64,000 nt of DNA from Eutreptiella sp. 'Long Island Sound 2002'. Its lineage: Eukaryota > Protista > Euglenida. Numbering within the stretch: position 1 is the first letter of the stretch; each line of letters begins with the position of its first letter. The stretch is taken from the NCBI GenBank assembly GCA_964036045.1, contig OZ038378.1, positions 200,260,001 to 200,324,000 of the forward strand, written 5' to 3'. Of the stretch, positions 1,113 through 39,589 are shown one piece after another. The position numbers were made by a program, and so were the translations under genes. Under the pieces are notes generated by a model. That model did not search any database. It was given only the letters and a program-made list of their open reading frames with translations, and was not told where the DNA came from.

Positions 1113-2641
1113 TACAGGGCAACTACCTCCCTCTCAACCGCCGACCAAGGGCGTGGTCCGGGGTCTCTGGACCCCGTCCCTCAGACGACGCCCTGTCCAA
1201 ACAACGGCCCGCGCTGTTCCCTCACCTTCTGGGACCATGTAATTCGGCAGTTCTGTTCTTCTGCGTTCATGGATTGGTATTGCATACCCCCCGCAGAGGC
1301 TGATCTTTCTCCTCTTACTCCTCTTCCATAGCCACAAGGTCACACGAGCAAGGCACTGGACAAGAAAGGGTAGAACTTGCGTCCATGGGTGAACTTGTGC
1401 GTAACACACAATGCACCCTCTCTAACGAACTCCGAAAGGAATGACGTGAGCCTGTTCAGGCTCTGCAAATCCCCCAGCAACCGAAGTGTCAAGTACAACC
1501 AGGGCCGGGAACTTTCCTGTCCTAAACTTGGCCCAATTGCAAAACTCTTGCCCGTCTGTTCGAAAACAAAGCCGCAGCAATGGTGTTGCACTGTGTGTGC
1601 ACGGTGTGCATATCTGGCAAAACGCACTGGAGACAAAACCATGGGTGAAGGGTTGAAAGCGGATGCAAATGGGGTGAAACGGGGTCAAAAAGGGTGAAGT
1701 GTGCTTAGCGCGCCCCATGCGTCCCGAACGTGGCCGCGTAATAACTGTGTGCCAACTGTGTCAGCCAAACCTCACCAAACCCAAAACCCCTTTCAAGGGT
1801 CCCTCTCCTACACAAACGTTTATAACATGGATGGCACTAATAGAATTAGACTGACGTTCCACCCAAGAAACCCAACAGCTTGTGGGAAAAGCCCAAAGCT
1901 ACTTTGCACTGCGTGCGCATTGCAATGCGGAGGTTGAGGCAGGCCATTTAAAGCGCCTCCCGGCGTCGCGGCGGGCCCCAGGCAGTATCCTTTGGATTAC
2001 GCATGCTGCTCGTAATGACCGGGGATACTTCTGGCTTTGAACGCTTGCAATGAAGATGCTCCTAATTGTATCGTTTCTGAGGCTTGCCAAGGCACCCCGT
2101 ATATTCTAGCCCATATTCTACCCTGTACCCTGTGTTTTCTAGGCACTCCGCGAGGGCCATTCCCCATCGAACTCGGGAAACACCGGCGGGGCACGCAGTG
2201 TCGGTTGTGGCTTCTTGCGTTTGGTCGTGGTGATCCATTGGTGGTCCATCGTCGAGCACCAGCGTTTGCTGGCTAAAACCTCTTGCCCCAGCAGTGGCCG
2301 TGCTGCGTCTTGGGGGCCTGTGTAAACTCATCAGACGGTGGACTCTCATCGAACGGGCCAAATCCAACGCTCCCCTCAAATGCTTGCGGCCACTGAATCC
2401 CAATGCCACACAATTCAATGCGGCTCTGAGCCAAACGACAGCGGTCGCCGACGAACCGACAGTCGTTGCACTGGACGTGTTCTCAGAACACCAGCCCTGG
2501 CTGCACCACCTGCGCAGTGGTGCATGACCATATAAACCACAACATTGTGCCTCAACGGCGCTGCGCCTCCTGACCGCTTTGCGAGGGAACCGCTATGCCC
2601 CCGGAACACTTACGCAGCCAGCGACAGAAGGAGTAATGGCG

Positions 2642-3034
2642 CTACCCGTACTTCAGGGTATACATCAGGATACTCGCTGCCGTGCTCACGTTGAAGGACT
2701 CTAGCGTGTCGTTGGCAATGGGGATCGACACCCGCACGGCATCACCGGGTAGACACTCCCAGGCCTGCGCAGGGACCCCTTCCCCTTCCCCGCCCAACAC
2801 CAGCAAAGTCCCCGCGGAGGGGGCAGCATCCCATGTCTGGGGCTGCACCGCGTGTGACGGTACAGGCCCCGCCGGCCGTGGGTCAAGGTCAGAGTCACGA
2901 TCCGGACATGGGTCACGTGTAGAGCTGCGGAAAGTGCTGGTCAGGTGGCTGCGACCGGGGCTAAGGCTGCGGGGGCTGGGGCTGAGGCTGGGGGTGGGGC
3001 TGGGGGGGAGCTTGCACTGCGCGCCCTTTGCGAC
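2642..3034 (-). CDS. SpoU/TrmH-family RNA 2'-O-methyltransferase, 3' exon (SPOUT C-terminal knot)
   Basis: Encodes LLVLGGEGEG ... VSIPIA ... ESFNVSTAASILMY, the SPOUT motifs 2 and 3, and ends at a TAG. The exon start is inferred from in-frame joining to the 5' exon. Confidence 0.85.
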   Translation of the reverse strand, partial: VAKGAQCKLPPSPTPSLSPSPRSLSPGRSHLTSTFRSSTRDPCPDRDSDLDPRPAGPVPSHAVQPQTWDAAPSAGTLLVLGGEGEGVPAQAWECLPGDAVRVSIPIANDTLESFNVSTAASILMYTLKYG

Positions 3035-3434
3035 CATTTCAGCAGGAAACACAACCCCATTTCCCCTGTGTATGACAAGAGCCCCCCCAGAGTCTCCGAA
3101 GCGGAGCAGAATCACAGAACTACATCACGTCTGCCGTGAATAAGCCCAGACCACGAGAAGGATGACAACTAGTTCCATTCTCCCTTCCTATTCCACACCC
3201 ACCCTCGCGGGATGCTCCATTCCCTCTTGCGACACCAAATTGCTTAGTCATATGCAAACCCGGCAAGTTTGCCACACTAAGCCTCAAACGGACCAAATTC
3301 TCTTCAGTTGTTTTGTGGGGTTGGGGTTGTACGAACATATTGCAAAAGCCAGCAAAACAACGTTCCAATTCGGCTTCGGAAACCTCAAAATAGGGTGTGA
3401 TGATACTCCATTTCAAACTTTCACATTGGGTTAC

Positions 3435-3868
3435 CCCTCCCCCAAATTCTCTTAAGATATTTAGGGCTTAGATTAGGGTTAGCGCTAGGAAGGGTCAGGG
3501 TAAAGGTCTTAAAATAATTTCGCATCAGGCTTACAGTTGGAGCAAGGGTATACTATATAGTATACTATATATATATATATACTCTTAAGATACTTTGTAT
3601 TAGGGTTAGGGTTCGGGTTGGTATTGGGGCTATAACTCTGTGAAGATATTTTACCATCTTCTTAGGATAATTATTGTCATCTTAAGATAATAATATTTTG
3701 CTTGAGATAACTTTTGGGATTATCGTTAGTTTTACGGTTGGGGCAAGGGTATAATTTTCTTTTAGATTCTCCTAATCTTTTGAATAGAATTACAATTATT
3801 TGAAGATAATCACAATTCTGCCAAGATAATCATAAATCGCTTAAGATAGTTTGTATTAGGGTTAGGGT
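3435..3868 (+). repeat. AT-rich ~255-bp-period spacer with TTAGGG clusters
   Basis: Recurring ttaagataat/ataatt motifs, punctuated by ttagggttaggg and variants. Confidence 0.8.
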
Positions 3869-4987
3869 CACCGAGCTGGTGGAACCAGTCTTGGTTTTAT
3901 AACCCTTTTTAGTGTCTAGGGTGGACCTACCAGGTTTAGCAGCAGCAGCAAGCAGCAGCAAGCAACAACACGCGCGAAATGGGTAAAAATCAGAACTCCG
4001 TCGTGGTGCTTTGGATTTGGTTGAAATTTTGGTGCATGATACCTATGGGTGTGAAGTACAATCACACAAAGTTTGAGCAAGAAACTCAACGGTGGCGGCC
4101 GGGAACGGGATTTGCAACTGGCGGACCTCAGTTTCAAAAACTGCAGTTTAGGGCCAAAAACAGCCACTTTTGGGCAAAAAAAGCCTTGGAACACATTCAA
4201 AACAGCCAAACGAAGGGAAACGGTGGGTACACCCCACGTGCGGCTTGACTTCCCCGTGTCAACGAGCTCTTTGCGGCCCTCTAACTCCATGATATGTCCC
4301 GGAAACGGCTGAAAAATGCCCCCAGAAGCTCCAAATGCCGACAGCCACAAACCAAGAATAGGCCATATCTTTGGCTACATGGCTCAAAATGCGATTCCGA
4401 GGGCACCTACTCCACCCGCACCCCCCCACTTTCTGTGGTTTCCACCCCTCAAAATTGCCCAAACAGACGCCTAGATCCCAATACCTCGGCCCACTAGGCT
4501 GCAGCAAGCTGCAAGCTCAAGCCCAAATAGGTGGGTGCCCAAATGGGTCAACAGGGTCCAATAGGGGCAAAAAGATGACTTTTCTCAAAAATGATCCTAG
4601 ACCATGTGCGACGCTAAAACAAGTGTTTTTGGACCGTTTTGAGCTTGTGGTGGCCCATTTTGGTCCTCCGAAAATCCCAAAATGCCTTGAAAATGGGCTG
4701 TTTTGGGACCAAAAATGGGTCAAAAATGGGTCCAAAACACATTTTTTCAAACCTCATCCTCGACCATTTGGGGTGCACAAACGGGTGATGAGCCCATTTT
4801 GAGCCCATTTTGGGGGCCCTCAGAAGTCCAAAAAGCCTTGAAAGTGGGTCTTGTGGTGATGGGGTTCACTTGCAAGCTGATTTCACTTTGTCAAGAGCCA
4901 TCAATGCGTGAATCATTCTTGATGTCCCTCACTAGTCATAGCTGATGTTCCCTCCCCCACCAGCTCGGTCCCAATATTCAGTCTTGA
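3869..4987 (+). mobile_element. ~1.1-kb non-coding element, family A, copy 1
   Basis: Starts CACCGAGCTGGTGG immediately after TTAGGGT, has the subterminal inverse CCACCAGCTCGGT at 4957-4969, and is followed by TTAGGGT. Near-identical to 5247-6394. Confidence 0.75.
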
Positions 4988-5246
4988 TTAGGGTTCGTTT
5001 TGAGGCTATAATTCTGTGAAGATACTTGTATTATTCTGAGGACACTTATTCTTAAGATTGTTGAGATAATGATATTTTTCTTGAGATAATTTTTTGGGGT
5101 TATCGTTAGTTTTAGAATTGGGGCAGGGGTTTCTTAAGATAATCCCAATCCTCTGAATATAATTACAATTATTTGAAGATAATTACAATTCTCCTGAGAT
5201 AATTATCAATCTCTTAAGACAATTTGTTGTTGTTGTTGGTTAGGGT
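4988..5246 (+). repeat. AT-rich TTAGGG-bounded spacer unit
   Basis: Homologous to 3600-3868. Confidence 0.75.
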
Positions 5247-6394
5247 CACCGAGCTGGTGGAACCAGTCTTGGTTTTATAACCCTTTTTAGTGTCTAGGAT
5301 GGACCTACTAGGTTTAGCAGCAGCAGCAGCAAGCAAGCAGCAGCAAGCAAGCAAGCAAGCAGCAGCACGCGCAAAATGGGTAAAAATCAGAATTCCGTCG
5401 TGGTGCTTCACATTCGGGTGAAATTTTGGTGGATGATACCTATGGGTGTGAAGTACAATCACACAAAGTTTGAGCAAGAAACTCAACGGTGGCGGCCGGG
5501 AACAGGATTCGCAAGTGGCGGACCTCAGTTTCAAAAACTGCAGTTTAGGGCCAAACACAGCCATTTTTGGGCCAAAAAAGCCCTGGAACACATTCAAAAC
5601 GGCCAAACGAAGGGAAACGGTGGGTACACCCCACGTGCGGCTTGACTTCCCCGTGTCAACGAGCTCTTTGCGGCCCTCTAACTCCATGATATGTCCCGGA
5701 AACGGCCCAAAAAGGCCCCCAGAAGCTCCAAATGCCGACAGTCACAAACCAAGAATAGGCCATATCTTTGGCTACATGGCTCAAAATGCGATTCCGAGGT
5801 CACCTACTCCACCCGCAACCCCCCACTTTTTGTGGTTTCCGGCCCTCAGAATTGCCCAAACGTACGCCTAGATCCCAATACCTAGGCCCACTAGGCTGCG
5901 GCCAGCTGCAAGCTCAAGCCCAAACAGGTGGGTGCCCAAATGGGTCAACAGGGTCCAGTAGGGGCAAAAAATTGACTTTTCTCAAAAATGATCCTAGACC
6001 ATGTGCGACGCTAAAACAGGTGTTTTTCCACCGTTTTGAGCTTGTGGTGGTCCATTTTGGTCCTCCGAAAATCCCAAAATGCCTTGAAAATGGGCTGTTT
6101 TGGGACCAAAAATGGGTCAAAAATGGGTCAAAAACACATTTTTCCAAACCTCATCCCAGACCATTTGGGGTGCACAAACTGGTGAAATGAGCCCATTTTG
6201 AGCCCATTTTGGGGCATTTTGGCCCTTCAGAAGTCCAAAAAGCCTTGAAAGTGGGCCTCGTGGTGATGGGGTTCACTTGCAAGCCGATTTCACTTTGTCA
6301 AGAGCCATCAATGTGTGGATCATTCTTGATGTCCCTCACCAATCATAGCTGATGTTCCCTCCCCCACCAGCTCGGTCCCAATATTCAATCTTGA
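5247..6394 (+). mobile_element. Family A element, copy 2
   Basis: Direct repeat of 3869-4987 with the same TTAGGGT flanks on both sides. Confidence 0.75.
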
Positions 6395-7225
6395 TTAGGG
6401 TTAGGGTTGCTGTCATGGCTATAATCCTCTTCAAATTCTTATAATTTTCGGAGGATACTTATTATTATCTTATGGTTATGACAATGTTGTTCAGATAATT
6501 GATGGGTTAGGGTTAGGCTGGGGTTAGGGTTGGGGCTAGGGTATAATTTTCTTAAGATAATTCGAGTTCTCTGAAGACAATTTTTCTTTGCAATTGTTTG
6601 AAGAGAGTTACAACTCTCCTGAGATAATTATAAACTATCTTCAGATAATTTGCATTAGGGTTAGGGTTAGGGTTAGGGTTGGTGTGAGGATTATAATTCT
6701 CTGAAGATACTTATAATTTTCTCCCGAAACTTATTATGATCTTAAGATAATGATAACTTTCTTAAGATGATTGGTAAGGTTAAGGTCAGGGTTGGTGCAA
6801 GGGTATAAATTTTATAAGATAATTCAAATAGTCTGAAAAGATAATTGCAAGTTTTTTGAAGATAATTACAATTCTCATGAGAAAATTGCAAATCCCTCAA
6901 GAGAGCTGCATTAGGGTTAGGGTTGAGGTTGGTGTTCGGGTTTCAATTCTAATAAGATACTTATAATTTTCTGCCAATAATAATTGATATATATCTTCAC
7001 ACAATAATAACTTTCTTACGAAAATTTGTGTTAGCGGTATAATTATCTTAAGATACTTATAATTTTCTTGGGATAATTAATATTATCTTCAGATAATAAT
7101 AACTTTCTTAAGATAATTTGTGGTAGGGTTATAATTATCTTAAAATACTTACAACTTTTTGATGATAACTATCGGTAGGACAGTAATAACTTTCTTCAGA
7201 TAATTTGTAGGGTTAGGGTTAGGGT
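6395..7225 (+). repeat. ~3 AT-rich spacer units with interstitial telomeric repeats
   Basis: (TTAGGG)4 at ~6655-6678, further clusters near 6400, 6910 and 7210; period ~255 bp. Confidence 0.8.
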
Positions 7226-10200
7226 CACCGAGCTGGTGGAACGGGTCTTGGTTTTTTAACCTGCTTTGGTGTCTAGGGTGGACCTAAAGGGTTTGGCGAG
7301 CAGCAAGCAGCAAGCTACAAGCAGCAAGCAAGCACGTGCGAAATGGGCAAAAATCACAGCTCCGTTGTGGTGCTTCGGATTCCGCCAAAACTTTGGTGGA
7401 TGCTACCAGAAACTCAATGTGGCGGCTGTTCCCGGTGTTCCAAGTGCCGGACCTCCATTTCAAAATCTGCAATTTAAGGCCAAAATCAGTCGTTTTTTTG
7501 CTCAAAACCGCCTTAGAACCCGCTAGAAATGGCCAAGTGAAGGGAAATAGTGGATACTCTACACATGCAGCTAGACTTCCCCATGCCGAGGGGCCCTCTA
7601 GGGCCCTCTAATTCGAACCGCGCCGAAAAGGCCCCCGAAAGCACCAAAATTTGTGCACCTTGGCCGCCGACAGCCCTAAACCAAAACCAAGATTGAATAT
7701 TGGGACCGAGCTGGCGGGGGAAGGAACATCGTCTAGGAGATTTCAAAGGCAAATGAGGTACGCAGTGGAAAGTGGATGAGAGCGGCCCAAAAGGCGCTAA
7801 GAATGAGTTGTATTCATCCGTTTGGGCACCACGACTGGACTGCGATCATTTTTGGGAAATCATGGGTTTGACCCCTTTTTGAACCATTTGTGGTCCCAAA
7901 TTGGCCCATTCTCAAGGCCCTTTTGGCCTTAACAGGGGCCAAAATTGCTCAACGGGGGCTCAAAATGGGCTGATTCCACTTGTTTGTGCACCCCAAATAG
8001 TACAAAAGCATCTTTGGGAAAACACTTTTTTGAACCATTTTTGACGCATTTTTGGTCCCAAAACATTGCATTTGGCTCAAAATGGGCTCATTTCACTTGT
8101 TTAGGCACCCCAAATGGTCTAGGATCATTTTTGGAAAAGCACATTTTTGACCCATTTTTGACCCATTTTTTGTCCCAAAACAGCCCATTTTCAAGGCATT
8201 GTGGGATTTCACGAGAGCCAAAACGAGCCACCATGAGCACAAATTGCGCTAAAAATACTTGTTTTGGCATTGCATGTGGTCCATGATCATTTTTGAAAAC
8301 AGTCTTTTTTTTTTTTGCACCCGGTGGACCTTGTAGACCCATTTGCCACCCACCTCTTTGGGCTACCTCTTGCAGCTTGCCGCAGCCCACTGGGCCTAGG
8401 TACGGGGGTGTAGGTGTCGGTTAGGGCAATTTTGAGGGGTGGAAAACACCAAACGTGGGTGGTTGCGGGTGAATTCGCTGCGCTCGAAATCACGTTTTGA
8501 GGCACGGAGCCCAAAATATGGTATGTTTGTGGTTTGGCACTGTCAGCGGCCAATGTGCACAAATCCTGGGGATTCGGGGGTTGTTTGGGGGCGGTTTGCG
8601 GACATATTGTGGAGTTAGAGGGCCCTAAAGGCCCTTCGGGAGGGGGAAGTCTAGCTGCATGTGTAGAGTAGCAACTATTTCCCTTCACTTGGCCGTTTTA
8701 AGTGGGTTCTGGGGCAGTTTTGAGCAAAAAAAGACTGATTTTGGCCCGAAATTGCAGATTTTCAAATGGAGGTCCGGCAATTGCGACGCCCGTTCCCGGC
8801 CGCCACCCTTGAGTTTCTGGATCATACTTTGTGTGGTTGTCCCTCATACCCATAGGTAGCATCCAGGAAAATTTGGGCCGAATTCGAAGCACCACGATGG
8901 ATTTGTGATTTTTGCCCATTTCGCGTGTGCTTGCTTGCTGCTTGCTGCTTGCTTGCTGCCTGCTGCCAAATCTGTCAGGTCCACCCTAGACACTAAAGAG
9001 GGTTGTAAAACCTAGACCGGTTCCACCAGCTTGGTGAAGAGACCATATCTTGGGCTACGTGGCTCAAAGTGCAATTTCGATCGCACCCACCCGGAGGGTT
9101 ATAAAACTAAGATTGGTACCACCACCTCGGTGACCCTAATCCTAACTAGGATTGAATATTGGGACCGAGCTGGCGGGGGAAGGAACATCGTCTAGGAGAT
9201 TTCAAAGGCAAATGAGGTACGCATTGGAAAGTGGATGAGAGCGGCTCAAAAGGGGCTCAAAATGAGCTACATTCATCTGTTTGTGCACCACAACTGGACT
9301 GCGATCATTTTTGGGAAATCATGGGGTTGACCCCTTTTTGAACCATTTGTGGTCCCAAATTGGCCCATTTTCAAGGCCCTTTTGGCCTTAACAGGGGCCA
9401 AAATTGCTCAACGGGGGCTCAAAATGGGCTCATTCCACTTGTTTGTGCACCCCAAATAATACCAAAGCATATTTGGAAAATAACATTTTTGAACCATTTT
9501 TGACGCATTTTTGGTCCCAAAACAGCCCATTTTCAAGGCATTTTGGGAGTTTGAGTGGCCAATATGGCTTGCAATGGGCTCAAAATGGGCTCACTCCACT
9601 TGTTTGTGGACCCCAAATAATCCCAAAGCTTCTTTGGAAAAACACGTTTTTGATCCATTTTTGACCCATTTTTTGGTCCCAAAACAGCGCATTTTCAAGG
9701 CATTTTGGGACTTTGAGTGGCCAAAATGGCTTGCTGTGGGCTCAAAAAGGGCCCATTCCACTTGTTTGTCGCCCCAAATAGTCGAGGATGATTTTTGGAA
9801 AACCACTTTTTTGACCCATTCTTGACCCATTGTTTGTCCCAAAACAGCCCATTTTCAAGGCACTTTGGGATTTTAGGAGGGCCAAAATGGGCCACCACGA
9901 GCTCAAAACGCGCCAAAAACACTTGCTTTGGCATCCCATGCGGTTCACGATCATTTTTGAAAACAGTCTTTTTTTTTTTGCACCCGGTGGACCTTGTTGA
10001 CCCATTTTGCCACCCACCTCTTTGGGCTACCTCTTGCAGCTTGCCGCAGGTCACTGGGCCTAAGTACAAGGGTCTAGGCGTTGGTTAGGGCAATTTTGAG
10101 GGGTGGAAACCACCAAAAGTGGGTGGCGGCGGGTGGATTGCTTGGACCTAACAGGTTTGGCAAGCAAGCAGCAAGCAGCAAGCCGCAAGCTGCAAGCACT

Positions 10201-14899: not shown

Positions 14900-16300
14900 G
14901 ACAATGTGCATGGGTCTTAGCCGGCCAAAATTCAACAATTTTTTGCCATTTGTGGAATTGGGGTTGGTCAGTAACATCCATTGCCACGGCTTGAACAAAT
15001 TGCATCTGTTAGTGCCCTTCCTTTCATTTTGTGCAATTTCATATTTGGAGGCACAAAGTTTCCATGATATGTTGGAGAAAAAGTTAAAATATCTTTGCTA
15101 GGCAGGTACAGCAGTGCGGCAAAAATCTTGTGATATACGAAGACTGCCCACAGCTATTTCAGCATGTTCTCTGGCATGTAGTGGAGATATAATTGGCACC
15201 TGCACCAGTTGATCCAGAAAGAAACGTTGCATCTTTTCACCCCTTTTTGAATTTGAATGAAGACCCGGGTCTGCACCGCGCTCAGTGCTCCCTCCACTGT
15301 CGACATTGCCATTCGTGTGCTCTATCCAAATGAACTTGCGCTGCCCTCTAGGCCCAGCTCCTCCGAGACTTCGCCTAGACGTTGATTGTCCAGGTGGGAC
15401 TCTTATCCTACGTTTGCCATCTTGTCTGCCTCATGGTTGCATTTCATGCCCAAACGTGATGGCACCCGCTCCTGCTTACACAAAATTTGCTCCCAGAAGT
15501 CGCGGTGCCACCATTCACGGTTTTCCACCCGCCACTGTTGGTGCCACCATTTCTTGTGATGACAACCATCAATTCCACGATTTCAAAAAGCACCTCGTCG
15601 CACTGTTTGGAAAAGACCTTGCTTGCGCGGTGGGGATTCCCATGTTCTCTGAACAACCTGCAACAACTCCACCCCGTAACTGCTAGCCCTTGGCATTCAT
15701 TCTCCATGGGAACTACCAAGAGAGATAAGCAGGGGTGGGTCATGATTCTCCGTTCTCATTTGGTGGGGCAACAGGAGTGAGCCGCAGTTGGGTGTTCCGC
15801 TTGGAAGCTGATTCGAAATGCATTGTGCCTAATCTGACGCTTTCAATGCTATATGGTGCTTGAAACGCAGGGGACGGCGGGAACGAAGACATTACACAGT
15901 TATAACTGCACGCCGTTGCGGCAATTTTCAAGCACCGTAACAATGGGACATGGGTCCCTTCAGAGAACAAATGCTGAACCGCTCCCTTCACTATTGAGTC
16001 TTTGAGAGCTGTCTACATCTTTCTGAAGAAGCACCATTCTGCTCGTCCCATCTCGTATCGTTTGTGCTATTTGTTTGCAGGGAAGGGGATATCCTTGACA
16101 TACCAACGAAGCAACCAGAAGTACTGTCGCCTCCCACCATTTGCGGTGGTTATCCCAGGAATTGCCGGATCCTTTCTCATCCCCACTACGATGCTCTTTG
16201 CGGTACATTGCCAACGGCGTCTATGGATTACGGGCTGCGTGCCATGTACAGTGCTGGGGAGCACTGTCAACAGGTTAGAGCTCAAACCTACTCGTCGGAT
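14900..16300 (-). mobile_element. Degenerate non-LTR retrotransposon 3' remnant with RNase H
   Basis: Minus frame (with stops) reads VENREWWHRDFWEQIL...RVPSRLGMKCNHEADKMANVG...EELGL. This parallels WVKVPSH..NEEADKLAEEG...QELGL of the LINE at 59 kb. The outer limits are approximate. Confidence 0.55.
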
Positions 16301-20065: not shown

Positions 20066-21457
20066 TTACACCGCGGTGACAGTCCATGGCAGAGTCAGCA
20101 TGTGTATCAACACCTCCTGATCGAAATGCCAGATTTGCCTCCAGCAGTGGCTCCGGGATTCATAGCGCACTACGTTACCGGCCCTCCCACACACAAGCAA
20201 CTCCTCCTCATACACATGGCCGTGGACGGGTTCAAAAGGCAAGCCAGGCCACGTGACCCACTGCCCTGCGGCTGGATCGTATGCCTCTGCGGTGTAGTCC
20301 GGGCCGCTCTGGTGGCCCCCGAGCACCACAAGCATGTGCCTCCATAAAACCACCACAGCATCGGCCCGGAGATGTTGCATCTCCGGCAGCATCTCCCAGC
20401 ATGCCTTGCTGAACACGTATTGCTTCAGGGTGCGGCTCCCCGGGGACATCATGGGCATCACAACAATTCGGTCCTCCAATTCGGTCGGACATTGCTCGTC
20501 CAAGGTGTTCGGCGGCCCCGGCAAACGCTTCCAGCAGCCGTGGTCGTACACTGCAAACCCCAGTTGGCCTCCGGATGTTGGACGATACAACGCCGCAAGA
20601 AGGCCGCTCACAGATACAAGGGTGGAGTCCTCATCCAGAAGGAAAAATGCGGGAAGTGGGACGCTATGCCAGACCCCTGCTGGGTCCAGTGCCTGAAGCT
20701 CGAAGGCCCCCGGTGACCGCTCGAAGAGCAGTACTAACCGCCCGTCCGACACCACAATCATGTCCCAGATCTCGAAGGTGATCCCCGGCAGCGTGACAGT
20801 CCTCCACGCCCACATATCAACGTCCAGCAGCTTCAGCGACGGGTGGCCGTCCGGTCCGAATGTCGCCACCACCAAAGACCGGCCCCACGGTACGCACGTG
20901 TCCATATGGTAGTCCACGTCGGCGTGGCGCGGGGCACGCAACTGCCGCCACCCGCCCACATCGGGCTCGTAGACGTGCGGGCGGCAGCCCATAGTTGTGA
21001 CTGCGAGGAGGCACTTCTGCGACTGGACCTGGCGCCGCAAGTCCGGCACTGCGTAGAACGCCACCTCGCGCTGTAGGCCCCGCAAAGCCCCGCGGCCGCT
21101 GGGTCGGTACACTGTTCCGTCCCGAAAGTACGCCAGCACAACCGCAAACCACCGCGGGTCGCGGTCCACAAAGAAGTGCTCCATCTCCTCGGAACCGTCC
21201 GCAAACATCCCGGAGGTTAGGGCTGAGAGGTAGTGCGGCCCGTGGCGCTGCAGCGCGTCCCGGCCGGCGTGGAAATGCGTCCCACCTACGTCCAAGTACA
21301 CGCACTGGGCCTGACGTGCATTGAGGGTCTGCACGTCGGCGCTCCGCGCCTCAAACTGCTGCCGTTGAAGCGCCAAGTGCTGCGATCTGCGCGCAATAGC
21401 CTGTTCCAAGGAAGTCAGCGCCGTGGCCAGGGCACATGTAGGGCCTTGCATTCGCAT
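20066..21457 (-). CDS. BTB/POZ (KCTD-type) domain protein with C-terminal Kelch-like beta-propeller, 463 aa, single exon
   Basis: VYLDVGGTHF...L...YLSALTSGMF...FFVDRDPRWFAVVLAYFRDG...EVAFY is a KCTD-type BTB signature. Repeats such as YEPDVGGW, LVVLGG and AEAYDPAAGQW are Kelch-like. Confidence 0.9.
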   Translation of the reverse strand: MRMQGPTCALATALTSLEQAIARRSQHLALQRQQFEARSADVQTLNARQAQCVYLDVGGTHFHAGRDALQRHGPHYLSALTSGMFADGSEEMEHFFVDRDPRWFAVVLAYFRDGTVYRPSGRGALRGLQREVAFYAVPDLRRQVQSQKCLLAVTTMGCRPHVYEPDVGGWRQLRAPRHADVDYHMDTCVPWGRSLVVATFGPDGHPSLKLLDVDMWAWRTVTLPGITFEIWDMIVVSDGRLVLLFERSPGAFELQALDPAGVWHSVPLPAFFLLDEDSTLVSVSGLLAALYRPTSGGQLGFAVYDHGCWKRLPGPPNTLDEQCPTELEDRIVVMPMMSPGSRTLKQYVFSKACWEMLPEMQHLRADAVVVLWRHMLVVLGGHQSGPDYTAEAYDPAAGQWVTWPGLPFEPVHGHVYEEELLVCGRAGNVVRYESRSHCWRQIWHFDQEVLIHMLTLPWTVTAV

Positions 21458-25479: not shown

Positions 25480-26260
25480 TAAGAGCACCCCCCCACACAC
25501 ACCCAAATAGGGTGAAAAACACATGAAGAGGGGCCAAAACATGCTTTAGTTAGGATGTTTGATCATTTTGCATGGTCAAAGTATGAAAAAAATCAGTTTC
25601 AGAAATTTCCATTTTTGAGCTACCGAGGCTGGAAAATAGCATAAGCAGGTTGTGTGCCCTAGACCCCTTGGTACCCCCCCCCCCACCCCAATAGGGTGAA
25701 AAACACACAAAGAGGTCTAAAACATGCTTTAAATAGCATATTTCGTCATTGTAAGTGGTCACAATATCAAAAAAATTTGCAAAATTTTCCATATTTGACC
25801 TATAGAGGGTGGAAAACTGCTTAAGCAGTTTGTGCACACCCCAAATGCCATTGAACCACCTACAAACAGCAATTTTGAAGCTTTTGGGGGGCCCATGGCT
25901 CGGGCTACATGGGCCCAGTGGCCACTGCGTGGGCCCCCATGGGTGCTCAAGCACCCGTATTGTCACCAAATGACCACCCAAACCCATCCTAGGGGCAACA
26001 AAAGGGTTTCGGAAAAAGTGGAAATGTGAAAAACCTTCAAGTGTCACTAAACAGCCTACGCAACAGCAATTTTGGGGCTTTCGGAGGGCCCATCCCCAAA
26101 CAAAGGGGGACAAAATCAAAAGTGGGTGCCTCACCCCTGCCTTCTCGCAGGCCCCAAAGAGCGCTGGAAAAGCTACGTCAGCCCTCCGTCCTCGCGGGTC
26201 CCCAAACAAAGGGGGCAAAATCAGAATGGGCTGCTTCACCCCCGCCCACGGGGGCCGCCG
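25480..26260. repeat. Dispersed composite repeat, including isolated units of the 105-bp satellite
   Basis: cccaaatagggtgaaaaacac...aaacatgcttta is duplicated (~25502 and ~25687). 26090-26260 matches the family D unit. Confidence 0.6.
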
Positions 26261-26749
26261 CCAGCCAATGTGTGACCCCGAGGGGTGTTCGACGGTTTGG
26301 GGGGCTGTAGGGGGGGGGGACCCCATCCCCCTCTGAAGCCCCCCCCCCCCCCTTCGTTGACCCAAACCCAGCACTGTTTCCGTCAGGCCCCGTCCAAGTG
26401 CGGAAACACACAAAGCTAACAAGACGCACTGTGACTGTTCATAGCTCATGATTGTTTTGCTGCGCTGCAGCACTTTCAGAGCAATACTGAATGTTGCCTT
26501 GAGTTCGCCCAAAGGCCTTCCCTTCCCCTTGTCACAAACCACAGACATATATATAGAGAAGTGAAGGGAGGCCAAATATTTTAATAAATTGTTTACTTTC
26601 TAAACCATTGGTTTTCTCTAATTAATGGCTGACAGCAGGTTATTTTCCCAACTTTCTTTTTTTTTTTGCACTATGCCTCCCAACCATCCGGGTGGGGGCT
26701 CCCGATCATAACTACCTAGGTGGCACATGGTTCTCTCGCTAGCGCTTCC

Positions 26750-27720
26750 GTTTCCGCTGAGTCCATGCTCTCTTTACCCCTTGTCGCCCAACCCGGGCTC
26801 CAGAACACTCTGTCTGCAAGTGACTTCACGGTAGTGGTATCCCGTGTGTACATGCTACTATTGCTTCTTCTTTGGAAAGAATCACCCCCTACTGCACGCT
26901 CGTTGTATATCTTGCACACAAAGACCTCTCCGGCCTCGCAACATTACAAGTTCTCCTTGAAACCATTTTGATTCTACCTGTACGTTTTCCTGTAGGCCTA
27001 CTCAAAAAACCTGGAATAGTTGCTTTTGGCCCACCAGTACCCATGTATCAATGCGCCCCCTGGTTTGCCAAGTGTTAAACACACGGTATGTAACGTCTGC
27101 CCATTCCTAACCTTCTATAGGTGCTACGGCCTTAGCGGCTTGTTGGCTCCCCCGGGTCATTCTGCAAACTATCAGTTATGCTTTGAATCATGAAGGAGAG
27201 CTTTGAGATTTTGTTCTACTACTAATTGCCTGTACAAGGTCTAAAACCATTGTAGGTATGCACAAGCGGTGTTGTGGATCATGGTGCCGTCAAATGCAAG
27301 GGTTTGTGGGTGGCATCTGCAGTACAACGCTTAGGTGTCATCTTGTTCGTTAAAACTGAATGGTTATGAAAAGCAAATGAAGCCAAGGTTGAAGCAATGG
27401 ACAATTGCCCCTTAGGTTGCGGTCAAAGGAGTTTCAGCATGCTGAAAATACGGCAGCCCCGGACTTTCTTAAGGCAAAAAAAAAATGCTCCAACGTTACG
27501 AGGGGCGCCGAAGGGGAACAATTACACTTTTCCAATTGATGCAAATGCGCCTGCTACCGAGATATTCACTTCCATTGTTTGTGTCCTTGGGAACCAGAAA
27601 ACATGACTTCATACGCGCCACAGTCTGAGATTGTTGGTGTTTCTCAAAAAGATGTGAATTAGCAATAGCTGGTTCGCAAATTTTGAGCACTTTGAGCACA
27701 ATGTGGGGACGTAGGCCATA
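26750..27720 (-). pseudogene. KDZ (Kyakuja-Dileera-Zisupton)-like transposase remnant
   Basis: Across frames, in the expected order: DCGAYEVMFSG, then HFFFALRKSGAAVFSAC, then ALYCRCHPQTLAFDGT (first catalytic Asp context, ~27283-27330), then AIVACTHGIPL (C-x-H-G, ~26830-26860). Many stops and frameshifts. Confidence 0.6.
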
Positions 27721-28429
27721 CCATTACTTGTCAGGGCTGAAAACAGGCAAGAAACGATGCAAACTGACGTTCCAAAGTTGTAGTTCAGGGACCACTGGGT
27801 GATTGCACTAGACCTCGTGCTTCCTGACACGCTGCAAGTGCCAAATATGTGTCCCTGCTCTGCATTACGAAAGGGAGCAATACTACCAATGTATGTGAGT
27901 ACAAGATGAAAATTGTTCAGAAATATCTCTCGATTGGGCATTCAATTGCAACCGATCACATTTGCTTCCTTTTTGTTGACCAATCGAATTCTCTTTGCCC
28001 CGAACCACAGTTGTTTTCCAATTGCTCCCCATGGCTTTGTCCTCCGGGTGCCTTCCACGTACCTAAGCTCACCTCCTCTTTGCCCTCTCTATAGTGGTAA
28101 TCAAAGCCAAACAAAAATGCAATTCAAACTCCCAGCTTGCTATCTCCATTGTCATCATAGAGGTCGAAATCCACGTTTGTGTGTGCTCTCGGGCACTGTG
28201 TAAATTACAGCAATGGGGTGGCAAAATTGGAAAGAAAAGCAGTAGACGGCAACCACGCTATCTGTGGTTAGAAGCGGAATGTGACGACCACCTCATTTCA
28301 GGTTCCATCTCTCAGCAAAACGTTGCAAATTCAGCAACATGGTGAGGAGTATTTCCGCAGAACATTAAACAATCAATCTCAGCGCTCAAGCAACCACCCT
28401 TGGCTTACATCAAAGACCATCGCTATGAT

Positions 28430-29235
28430 TCAATATAAAAGAAGACGGGCCAGCTTAGGAGGAACAAATCCTCCAAGACTATCAATGGCATCGTAGAGGC
28501 CATTGATAGCTGCTCTTTGGTCCGCCTCCTGCTGAAGCCTCCTCCGCTTTACCCGGCGATCACTCTCCCTGTGGCTGCGACGAATTGCGTCGCAAGCTTG
28601 CTGCGCCGTGTACTCGTTCCCTTTGCGACGCCTTCCTCTCTTTGCAGAAACAGTTTCCGGCTGTGCCGGTTGTTCCTCCTCTTGCTCCCCCTCGTATCCG
28701 TCATCCTCATCCTCTTCGTCAATGGCAGCGGCATCATGTTTGTAAGCAGCCCAGTCCTCATCCTCATCCTCAGTCTCTTCCTCGTGGGCATCTGCCTCAT
28801 CTTCCTCGTCGTTGTCCTCTTCATCTTCCGAATCTGAATCGTTCTCCAACACCGCCGCAAGCCCTGCGGCTCTACTCCACTCATCTCCCATCGGCACGTG
28901 GTCTCGACCACCCTCTGCCAGCTCCTCATCCTCTTCCTCATTGTCCCGCCTCTCGTCCTCCTCTTCTTCTTCCTTGTGCTCCTCTTCCTGCTCCTGATCC
29001 TCCTCCTCCCCACCTTTGTCCTTCTCCTCTTCTTCCTGCTCTTCATCGTCCTCCTCATGGACGTCATCGTACCAAAATTGGAATGGGTCTTTTGAATCAG
29101 AAAGTGTGCCATTGTCCGCGTCTGCTTCTGCTGTGTGTAGCATTTTGTCCTCCGCCTCCCCTTCTCTCTTCTTTTTTTCCTCCCCCGTAACTTCCCCCTC
29201 CTTGGGCTCCACCTTCTTCTCGAGACCCTCGCTAC
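28430..29235 (-). CDS. TRF-like Myb protein, exon 2: long Glu/Asp tract plus basic NLS-like C-terminus
   Basis: Acceptor ttgcgtgttccag|GT (phase 1); open to a TGA; acidic tract followed by KRGRRRK and KRRR. Confidence 0.7.
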
Positions 29236-29474
29236 CTGGAACACGCAAGAATGTGTCAAATCAAGTGTGGACCTCCTAATGAAGACATAGATGTGAGCCA
29301 CAGAGATTAAGACACCCCGGGACATACAACGTTTGCACAACATTCACTGAGCATGGGCTGTAGGCTTTTAGTATGGCCAGGCTCCCTAAGAATGGGGCAG
29401 AAAGCTTCGTCATCAACGAACGTGAAATGATGCGAAACAAAAACCAAACAACCTCAACAGTAATGAGCTCGTAC

Positions 29475-29637
29475 CCGCCTCCTTTTTCAGGATTCTCCAG
29501 CGGTCTTTTGCGGCAACATTTGAGCGCTGGGCCAAGCGCGAGTCCTTGACGGTGGCTTGCCAACTGCCCTCCCCATACAGCAAAACCCCTCGGCGAAGAG
29601 CGGCATCCTCCAAAGGTGACCAACTAAGGCGCGACAT
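29475..29637 (-). CDS. TRF1/telobox-like single Myb DNA-binding domain, exon 1 (~322 aa spliced protein)
   Basis: MSRLSWSPLEDAALRRGVLLYGEGSWQATVKDSRLAQRSNVAAKDRWRILKK; donor GCG G|gtacga is phase-compatible with exon 2. Confidence 0.8.
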
Positions 29638-30429
29638 TTTGCAAGACTGAGATCTGAGATAAACTACATGAGGGATCCTACATCAGGCAATACGAATAGA
29701 TCAGCGGAGCGCCACATGTCACGGGTAGCAAGTTCAAGAGAAGTTTTGGTTGTGCATATACAAGGCCATGCACGCACGTAGCTATACGTTGCCACCGCAA
29801 GACTCTGGATATCTAGGCGAGCGTGACGGCTAGCAACTGCAATGAAAAAAGCAAGTCGCCTGTCCAGCGCCGCGAGCGGAAGAGAAGGTGTGGAGGTTGA
29901 CATCTCGGGCGGTGCACACACAAGGTGGTGAACAGACAGAGCGGTGCATACACTAGGCAAAATATGGCCTGGGCAGAAGGCTACTTATTTGAAGAGTATG
30001 GGGGCGGGCCCCACCTGGCAGTGAAGGGAGCCATCTCTCGAGCACACGCGATTCAAAGAAAAACGTTTGGCGGTTCACACACCAAACGGCACATGCAAAG
30101 GGCACGAGAGACACAAGGCGGTGGACAAACAAGGTGGTCCGTCCCTACCGAAAGAGTCTTGTTATTTAGGGGGGATTCGAGGGTTGGCCCTTGCATTGAG
30201 CGAAGCGAGCCATCTGTTGTGCGAAGCTAGTCAAAGGGTACGCAAAAAGTATGGCGAGGTGGGTACGGAAAGGTACGGGCGGCAGGGGGTATGGGGGTGT
30301 ACAGCAGAGCTAGAGAAAGGGGGTATAGCAGGATATGGGGGCAATGGTAGAGGGCGGCACAGCTTGGTATGGAGGGGGTAGGGGGGGGGGGCAGCAGGAG
30401 GATACAAAGGGCTACGGGGGGCTGGAGGG

Positions 30430-33400: not shown

Positions 33401-34164
33401 CATGGGTCAGTCTGCTCGCTCTCTTTTTTGTGTGTCCTATGTGTATGCTGGCCTCCTATGATGGATGTTGCACTTCGCATGCCGTTGGACTCCTTTCATT
33501 TTTTTGCTTTCGGTCGAGTCAGGTTGAGGCCTGGAATATCGATAAACGAATTTTTGCATTGTGCATCCCCCCGATTCCCGGGGTGCTGCAAGCGATGAAC
33601 TAATTGAGCCAAGAATTCAGAGTGTTTGTTAGGCACCTATGATTCATAGCACATTCCTCGAGAAGTTGCGGCTATACCGGTAAAGAGAGTACACCATTTG
33701 AGTTCAAGATGTCATCCCATGGAACTTGTCTACAGACTTGAAACAACCAATGTAGACTCAGTAGTAAGAGCACAAGCGCTACATGCACCCAGCACCATGC
33801 AGAGTACCCTGCATTAGCTTCACATTACTCGAAAGCAGATGTCATGGTTCAAATTGAACCATCGCAATCGTACTACTCGTGGAAAAAGTGAATTGAGCCT
33901 ATTATTTCCAAGGAGGGCTGCGTTGGGCACCTCACACAGGTGCTCTCAATAACATTCAAGCCACCAAAGGGACTTTGTTTAGCATGCATCTGATGAACCA
34001 CAATCGTTTGATGCATCATCAGGATCGAGCATTTCAGTATCCAGATCCTCCTCCTCTTCGGAGCCATCTTCCGAACACAGGTCCTCGGAGGATATGGGCT
34101 CCGTATTCTCAAGGGCATCGTCAAACATGGCCTCATCGCGTTTGCCAGTGAAATGCGAGGAGCT

Positions 34165-34715
34165 TTTGTCTCCGTACCAATCCACTAACTCCTCTCGAAT
34201 TAAAATCTCCCTTTTACTCACAAGCAACATAACACCCTGCGGAGCAGATTGCCGTTCAGGTGTGCTACCTTGTTCCCTTGACCTCAAATTCCTTGTTTGC
34301 TCTCCTGTGTTTGTGCTAGACGATGCGTTGCCATAGCCTTTGAATAGGCAAGGACGATTCTCAAACACAGTATATTTTTTTTCGCGCGGATGTCTGTGAG
34401 CGGTAGCCACCTGGTGGTGCAGTTGGGACTGCTTTCTTGGGAGTTTACAAATGAACCGATGACATTGTGCAAGGATCCTTCGTCCCAAGTTGCCATAGCA
34501 GTTTCCACTTTGCTGATGCTTCTTAAGCCATCGATCACAAAGTTACACCCAAACCAAGGACTAATGAAATAAGACGTGTCAGCTCGGCTGCCCTTCGGTA
34601 TCATTGCCCCCAAAAAAGAGCAACAGTGGTGTTTTTAGGGATGGAGGAGCCGTGGTTAAAGACCCCGCGGCCAGCATCCTTGCCATTGATGCAAGAATGC
34701 TTTATTGCCAAGTGC
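34165..34715 (-). pseudogene. SET-domain (lysine methyltransferase-like) sequence with two frameshifts
   Basis: LAIKHSCINGKDAGRGVF...IPKNTTVALFWG, then SYFI...FVIDG...GSFVNSQESSPNC, then MLLVSKREILIREELVDWYGD. These are the SET N-motif, the NHxCxPN-like motif and the ELxF/YDY-like motif, in order. Confidence 0.75.
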
Positions 34716-34869
34716 GGATGCCGACTGCCCTGCGGTGTGCGCCACAGGAGACCATCCGGCAAATTTGCTTTTCGATCTTCTATAGCCCGAGTGCAAACAG
34801 CCATCTCTTTAAACCACTCAGCCAAATGGGCTGAGCAGTTGCAGAGCTGTACCAACCTGAAACCTTTCA

Positions 34870-37810
34870 TGACAAATTCTTGGAACCTCTGATTGTCAGT
34901 AATGGAGGCATCTTGCTGAAAACCGACAAGTCAAGAAAAAAAGCAGCAGCAGCATCGCTCATATCAACAACAGTCTTATGTTGTGGCGAAAGTCTTTGTA
35001 CTGTCAGCGAAACCAGCGAAAGGAGTGGTTTGAATAGGCGAACATCCGTCCAATCAACACGAAACACCATGAGAGAGATAAATGCTATGTTGTCCAAGTG
35101 CCAGGGTTGTACAACAATTGCACAAAGCAACTTGCTGCCAAGAAACGCTGCGAGGATTGCGGGCTGCTTATCAAGAATGCGTGACCTCACACCATTGTCC
35201 CCTTTGAAGCTTAATAGGCTATGTGAAACCTCCCACTGGTGAGACCACCTTAGACACATCGTGCACAGCGCGACTAATGTCCTACCCAAGGTAACGCGCA
35301 ACCTAGGAGCGAAAACCAAAAAAAAGTGTCACTTTGTTCAAGGTGGCGCACTGCCATGAACACAATCACACGGCACCACGTACATGCACATGTGGGTCAC
35401 TCAGCTCCCAGGTGTTATCTCCGGTCCCAACAGGTCTCGCTCTTTGACCGCATCATTAGCCATTTCCATTGGAAAGCACACAATCTTGATGGGGAATCTG
35501 TAAAAGACACGGTTCCACAAGGATGAAAGCCCAAGTATTTGTCGCACTACAACGAATCTTGAACACAGACACGTTGTTTTTTGGTAATTATACCGCGGTG
35601 TACAAAACTGCCATCACACACCTGCTAGTGCAGAGTTCCTCCTCCACAACAATCTTATTTGCATTTCGAATGAAGTCAACATTTGGACCATGATGTTCTT
35701 CGGTGAGTTCAATGGTCAATGTACCACTATAGCAAAAAGTGTCATTGAAACCTTTCAGGATGCTACAACCGTGATCGTCCAATTGTCCGGATTGGGATGC
35801 ACACATACCACAGCAATTCCTGCGTGTACAAAGTGCTCTGGATACAGGTTGGATGTTCTGTAGTGGATTGCAAAATGTGTAGGAGAACGGCGGAATCTTT
35901 CAGCAACAAGTCTCGGACAGCACTTGCTAGTTGTACTATTTTGGTAAGCCCTAGAAATTGTTGCACTCCAAGCATGGAAGGTAATTGACCGGCGGATCTT
36001 TCGATATGCCGGGCATACAAGGGACGCATCGCATTTACAAAGAATAACACAGATTGCCACACAGTGAGTAAGCGCCACGTCGTGCAGTGGAGCCAAACCA
36101 AAGGGATCATCGCTGGTGCAAGGACCAATTGTAAGACCAAAACAAATCGATTGGATACAACCACGTTGCTTTGTATCATCCCCGGACCAAGTGATGTGGG
36201 ATAACATGCAATGCAGATGGAAGGAAACACCTAGTTGGACATGTTCCTATCTCCTTCAAGAAGACATGGTAGGTACTTAGTTTGTCCATGGTAGGAAACT
36301 TTCTGCGGTGCATCTCATCAAGGACTGTTGCAGCAAGCTCAAGGGTACACCTGCCACGGAGAGCAATGTTACAGGTTTCATGATTTGTAAACACCCTTTT
36401 AGCTACACATGCCACATACCTATTGTTCCATAGTGGTGTTGGCCACAATTCATCTCCCTTTAGTCGGCTCAACCGATCATCCATTACAGCTCTAAAGGAT
36501 GACTTGCACAAAAAGAGTGTGCAAGAGACTTCTCCATCCCAAGGAGTCATCTCCTTCAACACATCCCATGGGTCTGCAGCAGCCTTTAGAAGCTTTGCTA
36601 CCGACTCCATTTCGTGAGTGAAAGGGTATATGAACGGGTGCCCCTTGGCAGTAAGTACATAGTGCCGAGCGATGACCAGCTGCAACGGGAAATGAGACCT
36701 CAGTAAGATGCACAAAATTAAGCCCCTAATACAAAGAAAAGACCCGCAACTCCTTCCTTTGACTTGCAAATCCAACAGGTCTCGACGCCCCCGCATCTTC
36801 CTTTCGCTTCTTGGCTTTTTTGGATTTTCGGCCAGGTTGACCCCCGTCTTTCACTTGTCTTGCTTTTCGGCAGCCTCGAGGAGGGTTTTGTCGCGTCTTC
36901 TCTGGTAAAGGAGGGGAATCTTAACTTTCCTTTGGATCACTTTCATTTGGTCGGGTCCGTTTCTTTGGCGTTATCAGAACTTGCCGCGTTTGAGCTAAGA
37001 GGAAATAGATACACAGGAAGGTGTTCGGCATGAAAAGACAGCATACATAAACGAAAAGACAGCATACATAAACATCTGACGGTTCAAAACCTGATAGAGG
37101 AGGCTTGCTTGAGCGGAGGGGGTTCGGACTTTGACTTCTTTGACTTTGACTTTGCGGCTGTGACCCCTTTTCCACGATGAGCCGAAGAGAAGGTGAGACT
37201 CACTTACCATTTGATACTCTTTTACAACACTGCAACAAACATGTAAATGCAATGCAACAAACATTTAAAGGCTGTCAAACACACTTTCTACCTGCATGGC
37301 ATCATCAATCACCCCTTGCAATTTGGGAATGACACCCTTTTCACCACGCATGGAGGGGAGGGGCCTCATGCATCGGAATCATCCTCCCACTCGTTGCGTG
37401 CCCTCTTGCTAGTACTCTTGGTGGCGAGCACGCTTCTTTGGCCGGGTTGCTTGCGATCTTTTGACCCAGCAGGCTGCCGGCCCATTAGACATGGATTCCG
37501 ATGGCACATAGTCACTAGTGCCTGACGGGGCAGTACTGCTGGAGGATGCACTCGTACTGGAGGAGGCATTGGTGGTGGAGCTGCTGCTACTACTACTGCC
37601 ACTACTACTACTACCCTCGTTTGGCCAAGAGAGAAGAGCAGGGGGAACAGTGGGTAGGGCCGGCGGCGCAGCAGGCTTTGCCTTCGGCGGCAATGGGGCC
37701 CGGAAATTTTCAAAGGCTTGCAACACCTTTGTCTTCTCCTCTTCGCTGCACCGGGCATAGTCATGGGACACACCGGGCTGCGCTTGTGCCATGTGGTGTC
37801 GCATGGCGTA
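34870..37810 (-). pseudogene. Decayed multi-exon coding sequence upstream of the SET remnant, truncated by the 85-bp satellite
   Basis: Protein-like ORF pieces at 37409-37804 (Ser-rich), 36176-36670, 35763-36000, 35588-35806 and 34867-35200; canonical splice-like sites such as ATG|gtaagt (~37206), ttcctcttag (~36996) and cccgttgcag (~36680). Confidence 0.45.
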
Positions 37811-37814
37811 GGTG

Positions 37815-38570
37815 CAATGTTAGTGGGCAAGGTAGCTACATAGGCCCTGCCGCCTTGGGGGTCCCCTCCGCTTCAGAGCGGGGGACAAAATCAGAAGTGG
37901 CCAACAAGTGGGCAATGTGGCTACATAACCCCTGCCGCCTAGGGGGTCCCCTCCGCTTCAGAGCGGGGGACAAAATCAGAAGTGGCCAACAAGTGGGCAA
38001 GGTGGCTACATAACCCCTGCCGCCTTGGGGGTCCCCACCGCTTCAGAGCGGGGGACAAAATCAGAAGTGGCCCACAAGTGGGCAAGGTGGCTACATAACC
38101 CCTGCCGCCTAGGGGGTCCCCTCCGCTTCAGAGCGGGGGACAAAATCAGAAGTGGCCCACAAGTGGGCAAGGTGGCTACATAACCCCTGCCGCCTTGGGG
38201 GTCCCCACCGCTTCAGAGCGGGGGACAAAATCAGAAGTGGCCCACAAGTGGGCAAGGTGGTTACATAACCCCCGCCGCCTAGCGGGTCCTCACCGCTTCA
38301 GAGGAGGGGACAAAATCAGAAGTGGTCCACAAGTGGGCAAGGTGGCTACATAACCCCTGCCGCCTGGGGGATCCCCACCGCTTCACACCGGGGGACAAAA
38401 TCAGAGGTGGCCCACAAGTGGGTAAGGTGGCTACATAACCCCCGCCGCCTGGGGGGTCCTCACCGCTTCAGAGCAGGGGACAAAATCAGAAGTGGCCCAC
38501 AAGTGGGCAAGGTGGCTACATAACCCTTGCCGCCTCGGGGGTCCCCACCGCTTCAAAGCGGGGGACCTTA
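37815..38570 (+). repeat. 85-bp tandem satellite, ~9 copies (family C)
   Basis: Unit agtggcccacaagtgggcaaggtggctacataacccctgccgccttgggggtccccaccgcttcagagcgggggacaaaatcaga; highly homogeneous. Confidence 0.95.
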
Positions 38571-39589
38571 ACAAAAAAAGATCTCGTCCCTTAACGACCG
38601 CCCTGGCTAACGCTCAAGCAGGCTCCCATCAGCCAACGTCCGACCCGGAGGCCGGGTTGGGGTCAAATTCCTTTTTTGTGCTTTTCAGCCATTTTCGAAT
38701 TCTCTAGAAATTCTGAGTATTTTGAGTACAGACACATAGGGTCAAACAAAAAAAATTTCCCCCTTCCGTATGCGTAAAACAAAATATCTGGCGCCGACAA
38801 AGCACATTGTTCCGTGGGACAATTTTGGGGACCGTAGAGCCCCCCCCCTCCCCCCTTTGGGCAGTGCTCCTCATCGTCGCGCCGCCGGCGGCTTTATATT
38901 GGGCCCTTGCCCTGCTTGCCCAGGCTGGTGTACCTCCCCTGTGGGCTGGCGTAGCCTTGCTCACGGCTGTGCCCCTAGGAGACAGCACCCTGGCGCTGCC
39001 CCGGCTCATGACTCCGTATGTCTGTGGCACGTTGTGGGTGTACACCACAGCAGGTGTGTCCCATCGGTGGGCCCTCGCGCCCACCGCCGCGACTCAGTGA
39101 CGAGCCGCCGAAACTCCGTGACGTCCCCGTGTTGTGCCAGTGTAGGGCTGGCAGAGGTAAGTCAGAGCCCCCCCCCCCCCAGGGCCCAGTGCAAGGGGTT
39201 GAGCCCAGCCCAGGGACCCCCCCCCCCCGCGTGACTGACAGGTCCGGGGCCGGGCCAGGCGCGGCACTGCCGTGTGACCCGACGTGCCTCGCAGCCCAGC
39301 CAGTCCACGCCCCACACCCACCGGTAGCGCGCGTGTCCCATACACACAGGTACTGCGGCATCTCCCTCCCGCGTGTGCCACCGCGGGGTACGGGGGTGGT
39401 CATCAGTCCGGTAGGCCTTGAGACCGGACAACCGAGCACCCACCGGACCAGTTGTGACGCGCAGGGAAGGGCGACGTCCATGGTCCCGGAGGTCCGGATG
39501 AGGCCTTGACCCAACCCAACCCAACCCCCCCCTTTGGGGTCGGGTCCCGACCAGGATCGGCCCCCATCCCCCTGCCTTGTTGGGACCCC

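Follow-up and report, generated by a model that had tools for sequence, protein, structure and literature searches.

A two-exon gene with a TRF1-like Myb domain and a long acidic tract belongs to a small duplicated family of probable TTAGGG-repeat binders

Results

A two-exon gene encoding a Myb domain, an acidic tract and a basic helix

The window analyzed here is a stretch of 64,000 nucleotides, and the gene under study lies on its minus strand at 29637..28430. Exon 1 (29637..29475; 163 nt, 54 codons) supplies the start codon and a single telobox-type Myb domain (29482-29631; protein residues 3-52). It is followed by a conventional phase 1 intron of 239 nt with GT..AG ends (29474..29236), and then by exon 2 (29235..28430; 806 nt including the TGA stop), which encodes a linker, the acidic tract, the basic motifs and a C-terminal helix. 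The spliced frame measures 969 nt and 322 codons, with a Gly codon split by the intron. The initial annotation had reported a 969-nt, phase 1, GT-AG frame containing no stop or frameshift, and our analysis reproduced it at exactly the same coordinates; the two-exon gene model is genuine. The ATG at 29637 is the first in-frame ATG downstream of a TAG located ten codons 5′ on the minus strand, and 16 nt 5′ of the ATG there is a conserved TCTCAG, which we infer to be a possible trans-splice acceptor. Word searches of protein collections found no spliced full-length protein of the gene. All four sequencing runs that contain the stretch consist of DNA, since their contigs span the intron; the stretch is absent from three very small runs taken to be RNA.

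Two further features of the surroundings were noted. A short repeat just upstream of the gene (29887-30330) was covered as much as about 290-fold more deeply than unique sequence (9115 versus 31 in run X2), and contig variants that skip 207-224 nt of it indicate that it is a high-copy unit of about 220 bp, either dispersed or in tandem. At a distance of 7 kb from the Myb gene, an intact ORF of 463 aa (20066-21457, minus strand) matches BTB_2 (E 1.4e-12) as well as Kelch (E 1.2e-5) and has the appearance of an ordinary host gene.

Database searches and folding were carried out exon by exon. Within exon 2, an acidic tract that is predicted to be disordered extends over 28670..29062 on the minus strand (exon-2 residues 58-188) and consists of 56% Asp+Glu. 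It is interrupted by the aromatic islands FQFWY and DW..Y and by an invariant DEWSRA.GLAAVL island at 28847-28885, and in the paralogues described below it is expanded in frame by 63 and 105 nt. Because two further frames are open over the acidic stretch as well, the length of the ORF is by itself weak evidence over this part of the gene. The tract is followed by a basic C-terminal module (28478..28642, minus strand) that comprises two basic, NLS-like motifs and one long helix (28478-28606; exon-2 residues 210-252); the motif KRGRRRK (28622-28642) precedes the helix, while RRVKRRR (28538-28558) is located within it. Both the long Glu/Asp tract and the basic motifs had been described at the outset and are present as stated. 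The AlphaFold2 model of exon 2, built on three family members, had a mean pLDDT of 54.7 and was disordered save for the helix at residues 210-252, which scored 88-93, with the acidic tract mostly below 55.

Exon 2 matched no Pfam family at E<=1, in agreement with the earlier observation that the protein has no TRFH domain. No relative of the exon was found in the PDB, its atlas neighbors had scores of only 0.76-0.80, which is chance level, and word searches with the whole of exon 2 and with its C-terminal 82 residues returned paralogues of the same assembly only. A bHLH or bZIP identity was considered for the basic helix, on the ground of a slight visual resemblance, and rejected, given the absence of a Pfam match at E<=1 and the misalignment of the signature residues.

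The Myb domain is of the telomere-repeat class

When exon 1 was compared with the PDB using phmmer, the first 16 places were all occupied by TRF1, TRF2 or zebrafish Terfa (E 2.7e-8 to 1e-5); SNAPC4 came after them (E 1e-3), and c-Myb-type repeats appeared near 0.5. The alignment with human TRF1 runs without a gap over 50 residues and shares LR.GV..YGEG.W and V..KDRWR..KK, and the recognition helix (V..KDRWR..KK) together with the arginine of the N-terminal arm is identical to that of TRF1. The close likeness to TRF1 proposed in the initial annotation is borne out by these matches. In Pfam, the Myb_DNA-binding model scored 21.2 bits on exon 1, below its gathering cut-off of 24.4, and the best match, itself weak, was to the CHD1 helix-turn-helix.

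An HMMER search of 1.84 billion representatives with the exon-1 Myb domain returned 214 proteins at E<=1e-3. Beyond two ORFs of the paralogues, the nearest relatives with a single Myb domain were proteins combining TRFH with Myb (47% identity) and proteins with an N-terminal Myb domain and a linker-histone domain (55-57%); the TRFH-Myb proteins P0010 and P0011 do score on the Pfam model PF08558. A Pfam scan for partner domains covered 54 of the 148 best Myb matches and found Linker_histone in 8, TRF in 4 and Rap1_C in 1, so that among these 54 the partner domains other than Myb/SANT-type models are mostly telomere-related. One further match, P0085, which stems from short JGI metagenome contigs and not from the assembly studied here, combines an N-terminal telobox Myb domain with a weak Tudor match. 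The top PDB matches, the relatives found by HMMER and their mostly telomere-related partner domains place the exon-1 domain, at the level of sequence, in the telobox (telomere-repeat) class of Myb domains, and it is predicted to read duplex TTAGGG-type repeats.

A small family within a duplicated block

Paralogues were identified as ORFs matched by exon 2, all of which came from one ENA assembly, and their contigs were fetched as loci L001-L004. With the window copy included, the family amounts to about nine copies, which fall into three diverged lineages and are spread over five contigs of a single assembly, and exact cluster look-up revealed no further contigs carrying it. L001, L003 and L004 each contain a tandem pair made up of one A-type and one B-type copy, and in L002 a B copy accompanies a 5′-truncated A copy. 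Sequence pieces with 90-95% likeness to the window had a read depth about 8-16 times that of window-specific contigs, which agrees with a family of nine copies. The searches gave no orthologue outside the assembly, and the family appears so far to be confined to this genome.

Besides the near-identical blocks of L001, L003 and L004, L002 is 95.7% alike over 4.8 kb. The three near-identical blocks occupy 28.9-49.8 kb of a 1.4-Mb contig (L001), 108.7-121.2 kb of 162.6 kb (L003) and 5.3-17.5 kb of 200 kb (L004); they are 5-41 kb from a contig end and may be subtelomeric, or the assembly may break at repeats. In L002, two ORFs of at least 929 aa and of 735 aa without a Pfam match (1-5012, minus strand) lie 5 kb from the Myb copies.

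By blastn, the window shares with L001 a block of about 11 kb, the parts of which are all in the same orientation as the Myb gene. An upstream region of about 750 nt (29638..30388, minus strand) is common to all paralogues at 82-84% identity, and a 1.7-kb downstream segment that we call D (26712..28446, minus strand) follows each gene copy in every locus at 82% identity. The rest of the block (33975..37352, minus strand; 3.4 kb) is 88-90% identical to L001 3578-6738 and holds, on the same strand, a SET-like pseudogene (33982-35529) and decayed upstream ORFs with stops (35817-37351). The SET-like ORF, downstream of which the Myb copies are placed, adjoins the Myb genes in L001, L003 and L004 and is intact in L001 (5307-6731, 475 aa), where its signals are weak but concordant (Pfam SET, E 0.0066; KMT5A in the PDB, E 0.26; SET clusters of the atlas, 0.90). 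Its decayed counterpart in the window needs at least four frame changes relative to L001, and the ORFs that follow carry stops, which confirms the initial description of the flanking remnants as ruined. The ORFs of the L001 counterpart of segment D had no Pfam match at E<=0.1; a KDZ-type transposase in the downstream segment was rejected on the same ground, the ORFs of its best-preserved copy being without a match at that threshold.

An 85-bp satellite of about ten units is found just beyond one end of the block in the window (37737-38631), with a single related unit (about 69% identical) past the other end (26077-26125) and one unit in L002 (6222-6307).

Purifying selection on the two ends of the protein

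We then considered how the copies have diverged, using an alignment of the window copy and seven full-length paralogues. The ATG, GT and AG are kept in 8/8 aligned copies. Stops were found in two copies, at exon-2 codon 35 of L001_B and at a Myb tryptophan of L002_B (TGG to TGA), and at most 6/7 of the full-length paralogues are open, in addition to the window copy. The intron, with a K of 0.16-0.19, diverges like the flanks and was used as the neutral yardstick. Between lineages, pN/pS was 0.38-0.53 (Fisher 1e-4 to 1e-7), and the corresponding omega was 0.14-0.24 for the Myb exon, 0.14-0.5 for the C-terminal 70 codons and about 0.4-0.8 for the linker and acidic tract, the acidic tract itself giving about 0.4-0.7. 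Exon 1 is 92% identical to the paralogues, compared to 84% for the intron (Fisher p 0.02). A change was placed on a branch when the two remaining lineages agreed with each other; counted in this way, the Myb domain and C-terminus together showed, over all branches, 17 synonymous versus 13 non-synonymous changes (p 1e-4).

These counts are small and were obtained among paralogues of one assembly; they show that the Myb exon and the C-terminal helix are under purifying selection between lineages, while the linker and acidic tract drift near-neutrally. The earlier proposal that the gene is kept under selection, for which dN/dS among copies was the measure, holds between lineages for the Myb exon and the C-terminal helix but not within lineages, where pN/pS was 0.5-0.95 and indistinguishable from 1. 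These within-lineage values, together with the two stop-bearing copies, suggest that the constraint on the family may have relaxed recently.

The window copy: an open frame with a replaced 3′ end

The window copy differs from its paralogues at the 3′ end. The native stop and the 15 codons before it, which 8/8 paralogues have in common, have been lost to a deletion of about 215 bp at about 28446-28451; the paralogues end in ...PPKLTSSPGQ[L/P]KITTWFH*, whereas in the window the homology ends after ...FVPPKL and gives way to six new codons (ARLLLY) and a new stop (28433..28451, minus strand), and homology between the window and the paralogues resumes after about 215 nt. The missing tail shows good conservation when the A and B lineages are compared, and the window copy may be impaired as a result. 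The gene was rightly described as intact amid ruined neighbors, in that its frame is open, which considering stops alone would occur by chance in about 4 of 100 cases; the copy is nonetheless not pristine, its 3′ end having been replaced.

The window copy could instead be a duplicate that is dead or dying, unexpressed and with a frame that has merely survived so far, the working genes being the A/B tandem pair elsewhere. We regard this as unlikely, although several observations would fit it. Besides the loss of the conserved C-terminal codons and native stop, all other genes of the window block are pseudogenes, omega taken over the entire window branch comes to about 0.62 (p 0.07), and in several frames the GA-rich acidic tract contains few stops. 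Against it, when 77 neutral substitutions were simulated the frame stayed free of stops in only 3.6% of runs, and the 966 nt of coding sequence contain no frameshifting indels, compared to 4.8 per kb (pairwise) in aligned non-coding DNA. Furthermore, on the window branch the Myb domain and C-terminus show 8 synonymous versus 8 non-synonymous changes (p 0.02) where neutrality predicts about 3 non-synonymous per synonymous change, and the window-specific Myb replacements I29T, R37Q and Q53E all lie outside the recognition helix. The open frame amid decayed neighbors is thus unlikely to have arisen by chance, and the window copy may be a member of the family that still works or that was disabled only recently.

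Transposon origin and TTAGGG arrays

The initial annotation had also proposed that the gene was derived from a transposon or served as a transposon-targeting protein. Neither proposal found support: Pfam matches to a transposase, integrase or reverse transcriptase were absent from the ORFs of both the window block and the better-preserved L001 block, no terminal inverted repeats of the duplicated block were found, and the Myb family is low-copy, on five contigs only. Domestication from a transposon is unsupported. TRAS1 was considered as a precedent for a transposon Myb domain aimed at telomeric repeats and was dropped, as the paper found gives no support.

Arrays of TTAGGG occur in the window at 3600-7224 (six short arrays), in L001 at 20262-20309 and in L002 at 9689-9700 and 15907-15978. 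Those at L001 20262-20309 and L002 15907-15978 are interstitial, consist of clean (TTAGGG)8 and are situated some kilobases downstream of the paralogous blocks. The L002 array at 9689-9700, TTAGGGTTAGGG, lies about 85 nt upstream of the point at which the 5′-truncated A copy begins (9786) and is located at the end of a tandem repeat that recurs in L003 (96-2201); from its sequence, the region L002 8938-9800 is a rearrangement junction, with a telomere-type dimer as its mark. Judged without a genome-wide baseline, arrays near the loci prove nothing by themselves.

These arrays have a bearing on a distinctly improbable reading, according to which the block of about 11 kb is a large mobile element and its Myb protein an accessory that steers it, or related non-autonomous elements, to TTAGGG repeats, comparable to the arrangement in PIF/Harbinger transposons. 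Such an element could account for a repeated multi-gene block whose non-coding parts are conserved as much as the introns, for the position of TTAGGG arrays 1.5-7 kb from the L001 and L002 paralogues with a 5′-truncated L002 copy abutting the dimer, and for between-lineage purifying selection alongside decaying single copies, which is a pattern of transposon genes as well. It is opposed by the lack of matches to mobile-element enzymes in the ORFs of the best-preserved block, by a block without terminal inverted repeats, and by the restriction of the family to five contigs, three of which (L001, L003 and L004) run collinear along the entire 12 kb retrieved, at 98.2-98.7%, making recent large duplicates or haplotypes likelier than separate insertions. 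The copies also form tandem units of gene plus spacer, an arrangement compatible with unequal crossing-over.

In PIF/Harbinger transposons, a repeated element encodes a small DNA-binding protein of the Myb/SANT type alongside its other genes, and the Myb domains of these accessory proteins are of the SANT/trihelix kind. The likeness to our family is one of concept only, since the domain here is a telobox Myb and not SANT/trihelix, and no transposase partner, terminal repeats or high copy number were found.

Discussion

The gene is a genuine two-exon nuclear gene from a small family within a duplicated block of about 11 kb, and we find it probable, on the sequence evidence presented above, that it encodes a lineage-specific host TTAGGG-repeat binder. 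The protein would consist of a selected Myb head, a drifting acidic and disordered middle of about 190 residues and a selected basic tail with a long amphipathic helix. The telobox Myb head would bind duplex TTAGGG-type repeats in telomeric or interstitial arrays of this genome, and the basic clusters would act as nuclear localization signals that bring about its nuclear import. Through the long helix this single-Myb protein could self-associate, a role that the TRFH domain has in TRFs and the coiled coil in plant TRBs, and the acidic tract with its aromatic islands might engage histones or other basic partners, or else mask the basic module.

The best solved relatives are vertebrate TRF1 and TRF2 (TERF1/TERF2), with which the protein shares the ungapped 50-residue Myb domain with YGEG.W and V..KDRWR..KK. 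TRF1 carries an acidic region. In contrast to TRF1 and TRF2, the window protein has no match to the Pfam TRF domain (TRFH, PF08558), its Myb domain is N-terminal (residues 3-52) rather than C-terminal, its acidic region comes after the Myb domain and is far longer, and its C-terminal basic helix has no TRF counterpart. The initial annotation considered an N-terminal Myb domain to be unlike canonical TRFs; this is true of the TRFs themselves, but there is a precedent in the plant SMH/TRB proteins, which have a telobox Myb domain at the N-terminus (PMC10167121). The repeats bound by TRBs are telomeric as well as interstitial, and TRBs cooperate with the SET-domain PRC2 (PMC10167121).

The SMH/TRB proteins are the most identical single-Myb matches (55-57%), and the likeness extends to the layout of a single N-terminal telobox Myb domain in a protein of about 300 residues and, given the cooperation of TRBs with PRC2, to the SET-like gene that is a constant neighbor of the Myb genes. 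There are also clear differences: the window protein has no match to the H1/H5 domain (GH1, PF00538), the acidic disordered tract standing in that place; the TRB Myb loop between helices 2 and 3 is about 4 residues longer; and TRBs are described as plant-specific. SMH/TRB proteins have a C-terminal coiled coil; the window protein is predicted to have one long helix near its C-terminus (exon-2 residues 210-252, pLDDT about 90). No account of proteins that bind double-stranded telomere repeats in euglenid-like protists came up in a literature search.

By analogy with the TRBs, one might imagine that the Myb-acidic proteins and their SET-like neighbor form a lineage-specific chromatin module that marks or silences interstitial TTAGGG arrays, as an independent analogue of the TRB-PRC2 partnership, but we would give this idea little weight. 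It is very improbable that the protein is a chromatin or transcription factor with a non-telomeric target, its telobox likeness reflecting shared ancestry only: one domain of 50 residues gives little ground for predicting specificity, the weak best Pfam match is to CHD1, and the main sites of action of plant TRBs are short promoter teloboxes (PMC10167121), but the recognition helix and N-terminal-arm arginine are those of TRF1, and the recognizable partner domains among the nearest relatives are mostly telomere-related.

As a single gene known from its sequence, the window copy is a modest lead and hardly a surprise. If its reading as a host TTAGGG-repeat binder is true, a TRF1-like head placed on a different body, made of an acidic disordered tract and a basic helix, would represent a third way to build a telomere-repeat binder, and the family would be a concrete candidate for what binds the interstitial TTAGGG arrays, of which there are many in this genome.
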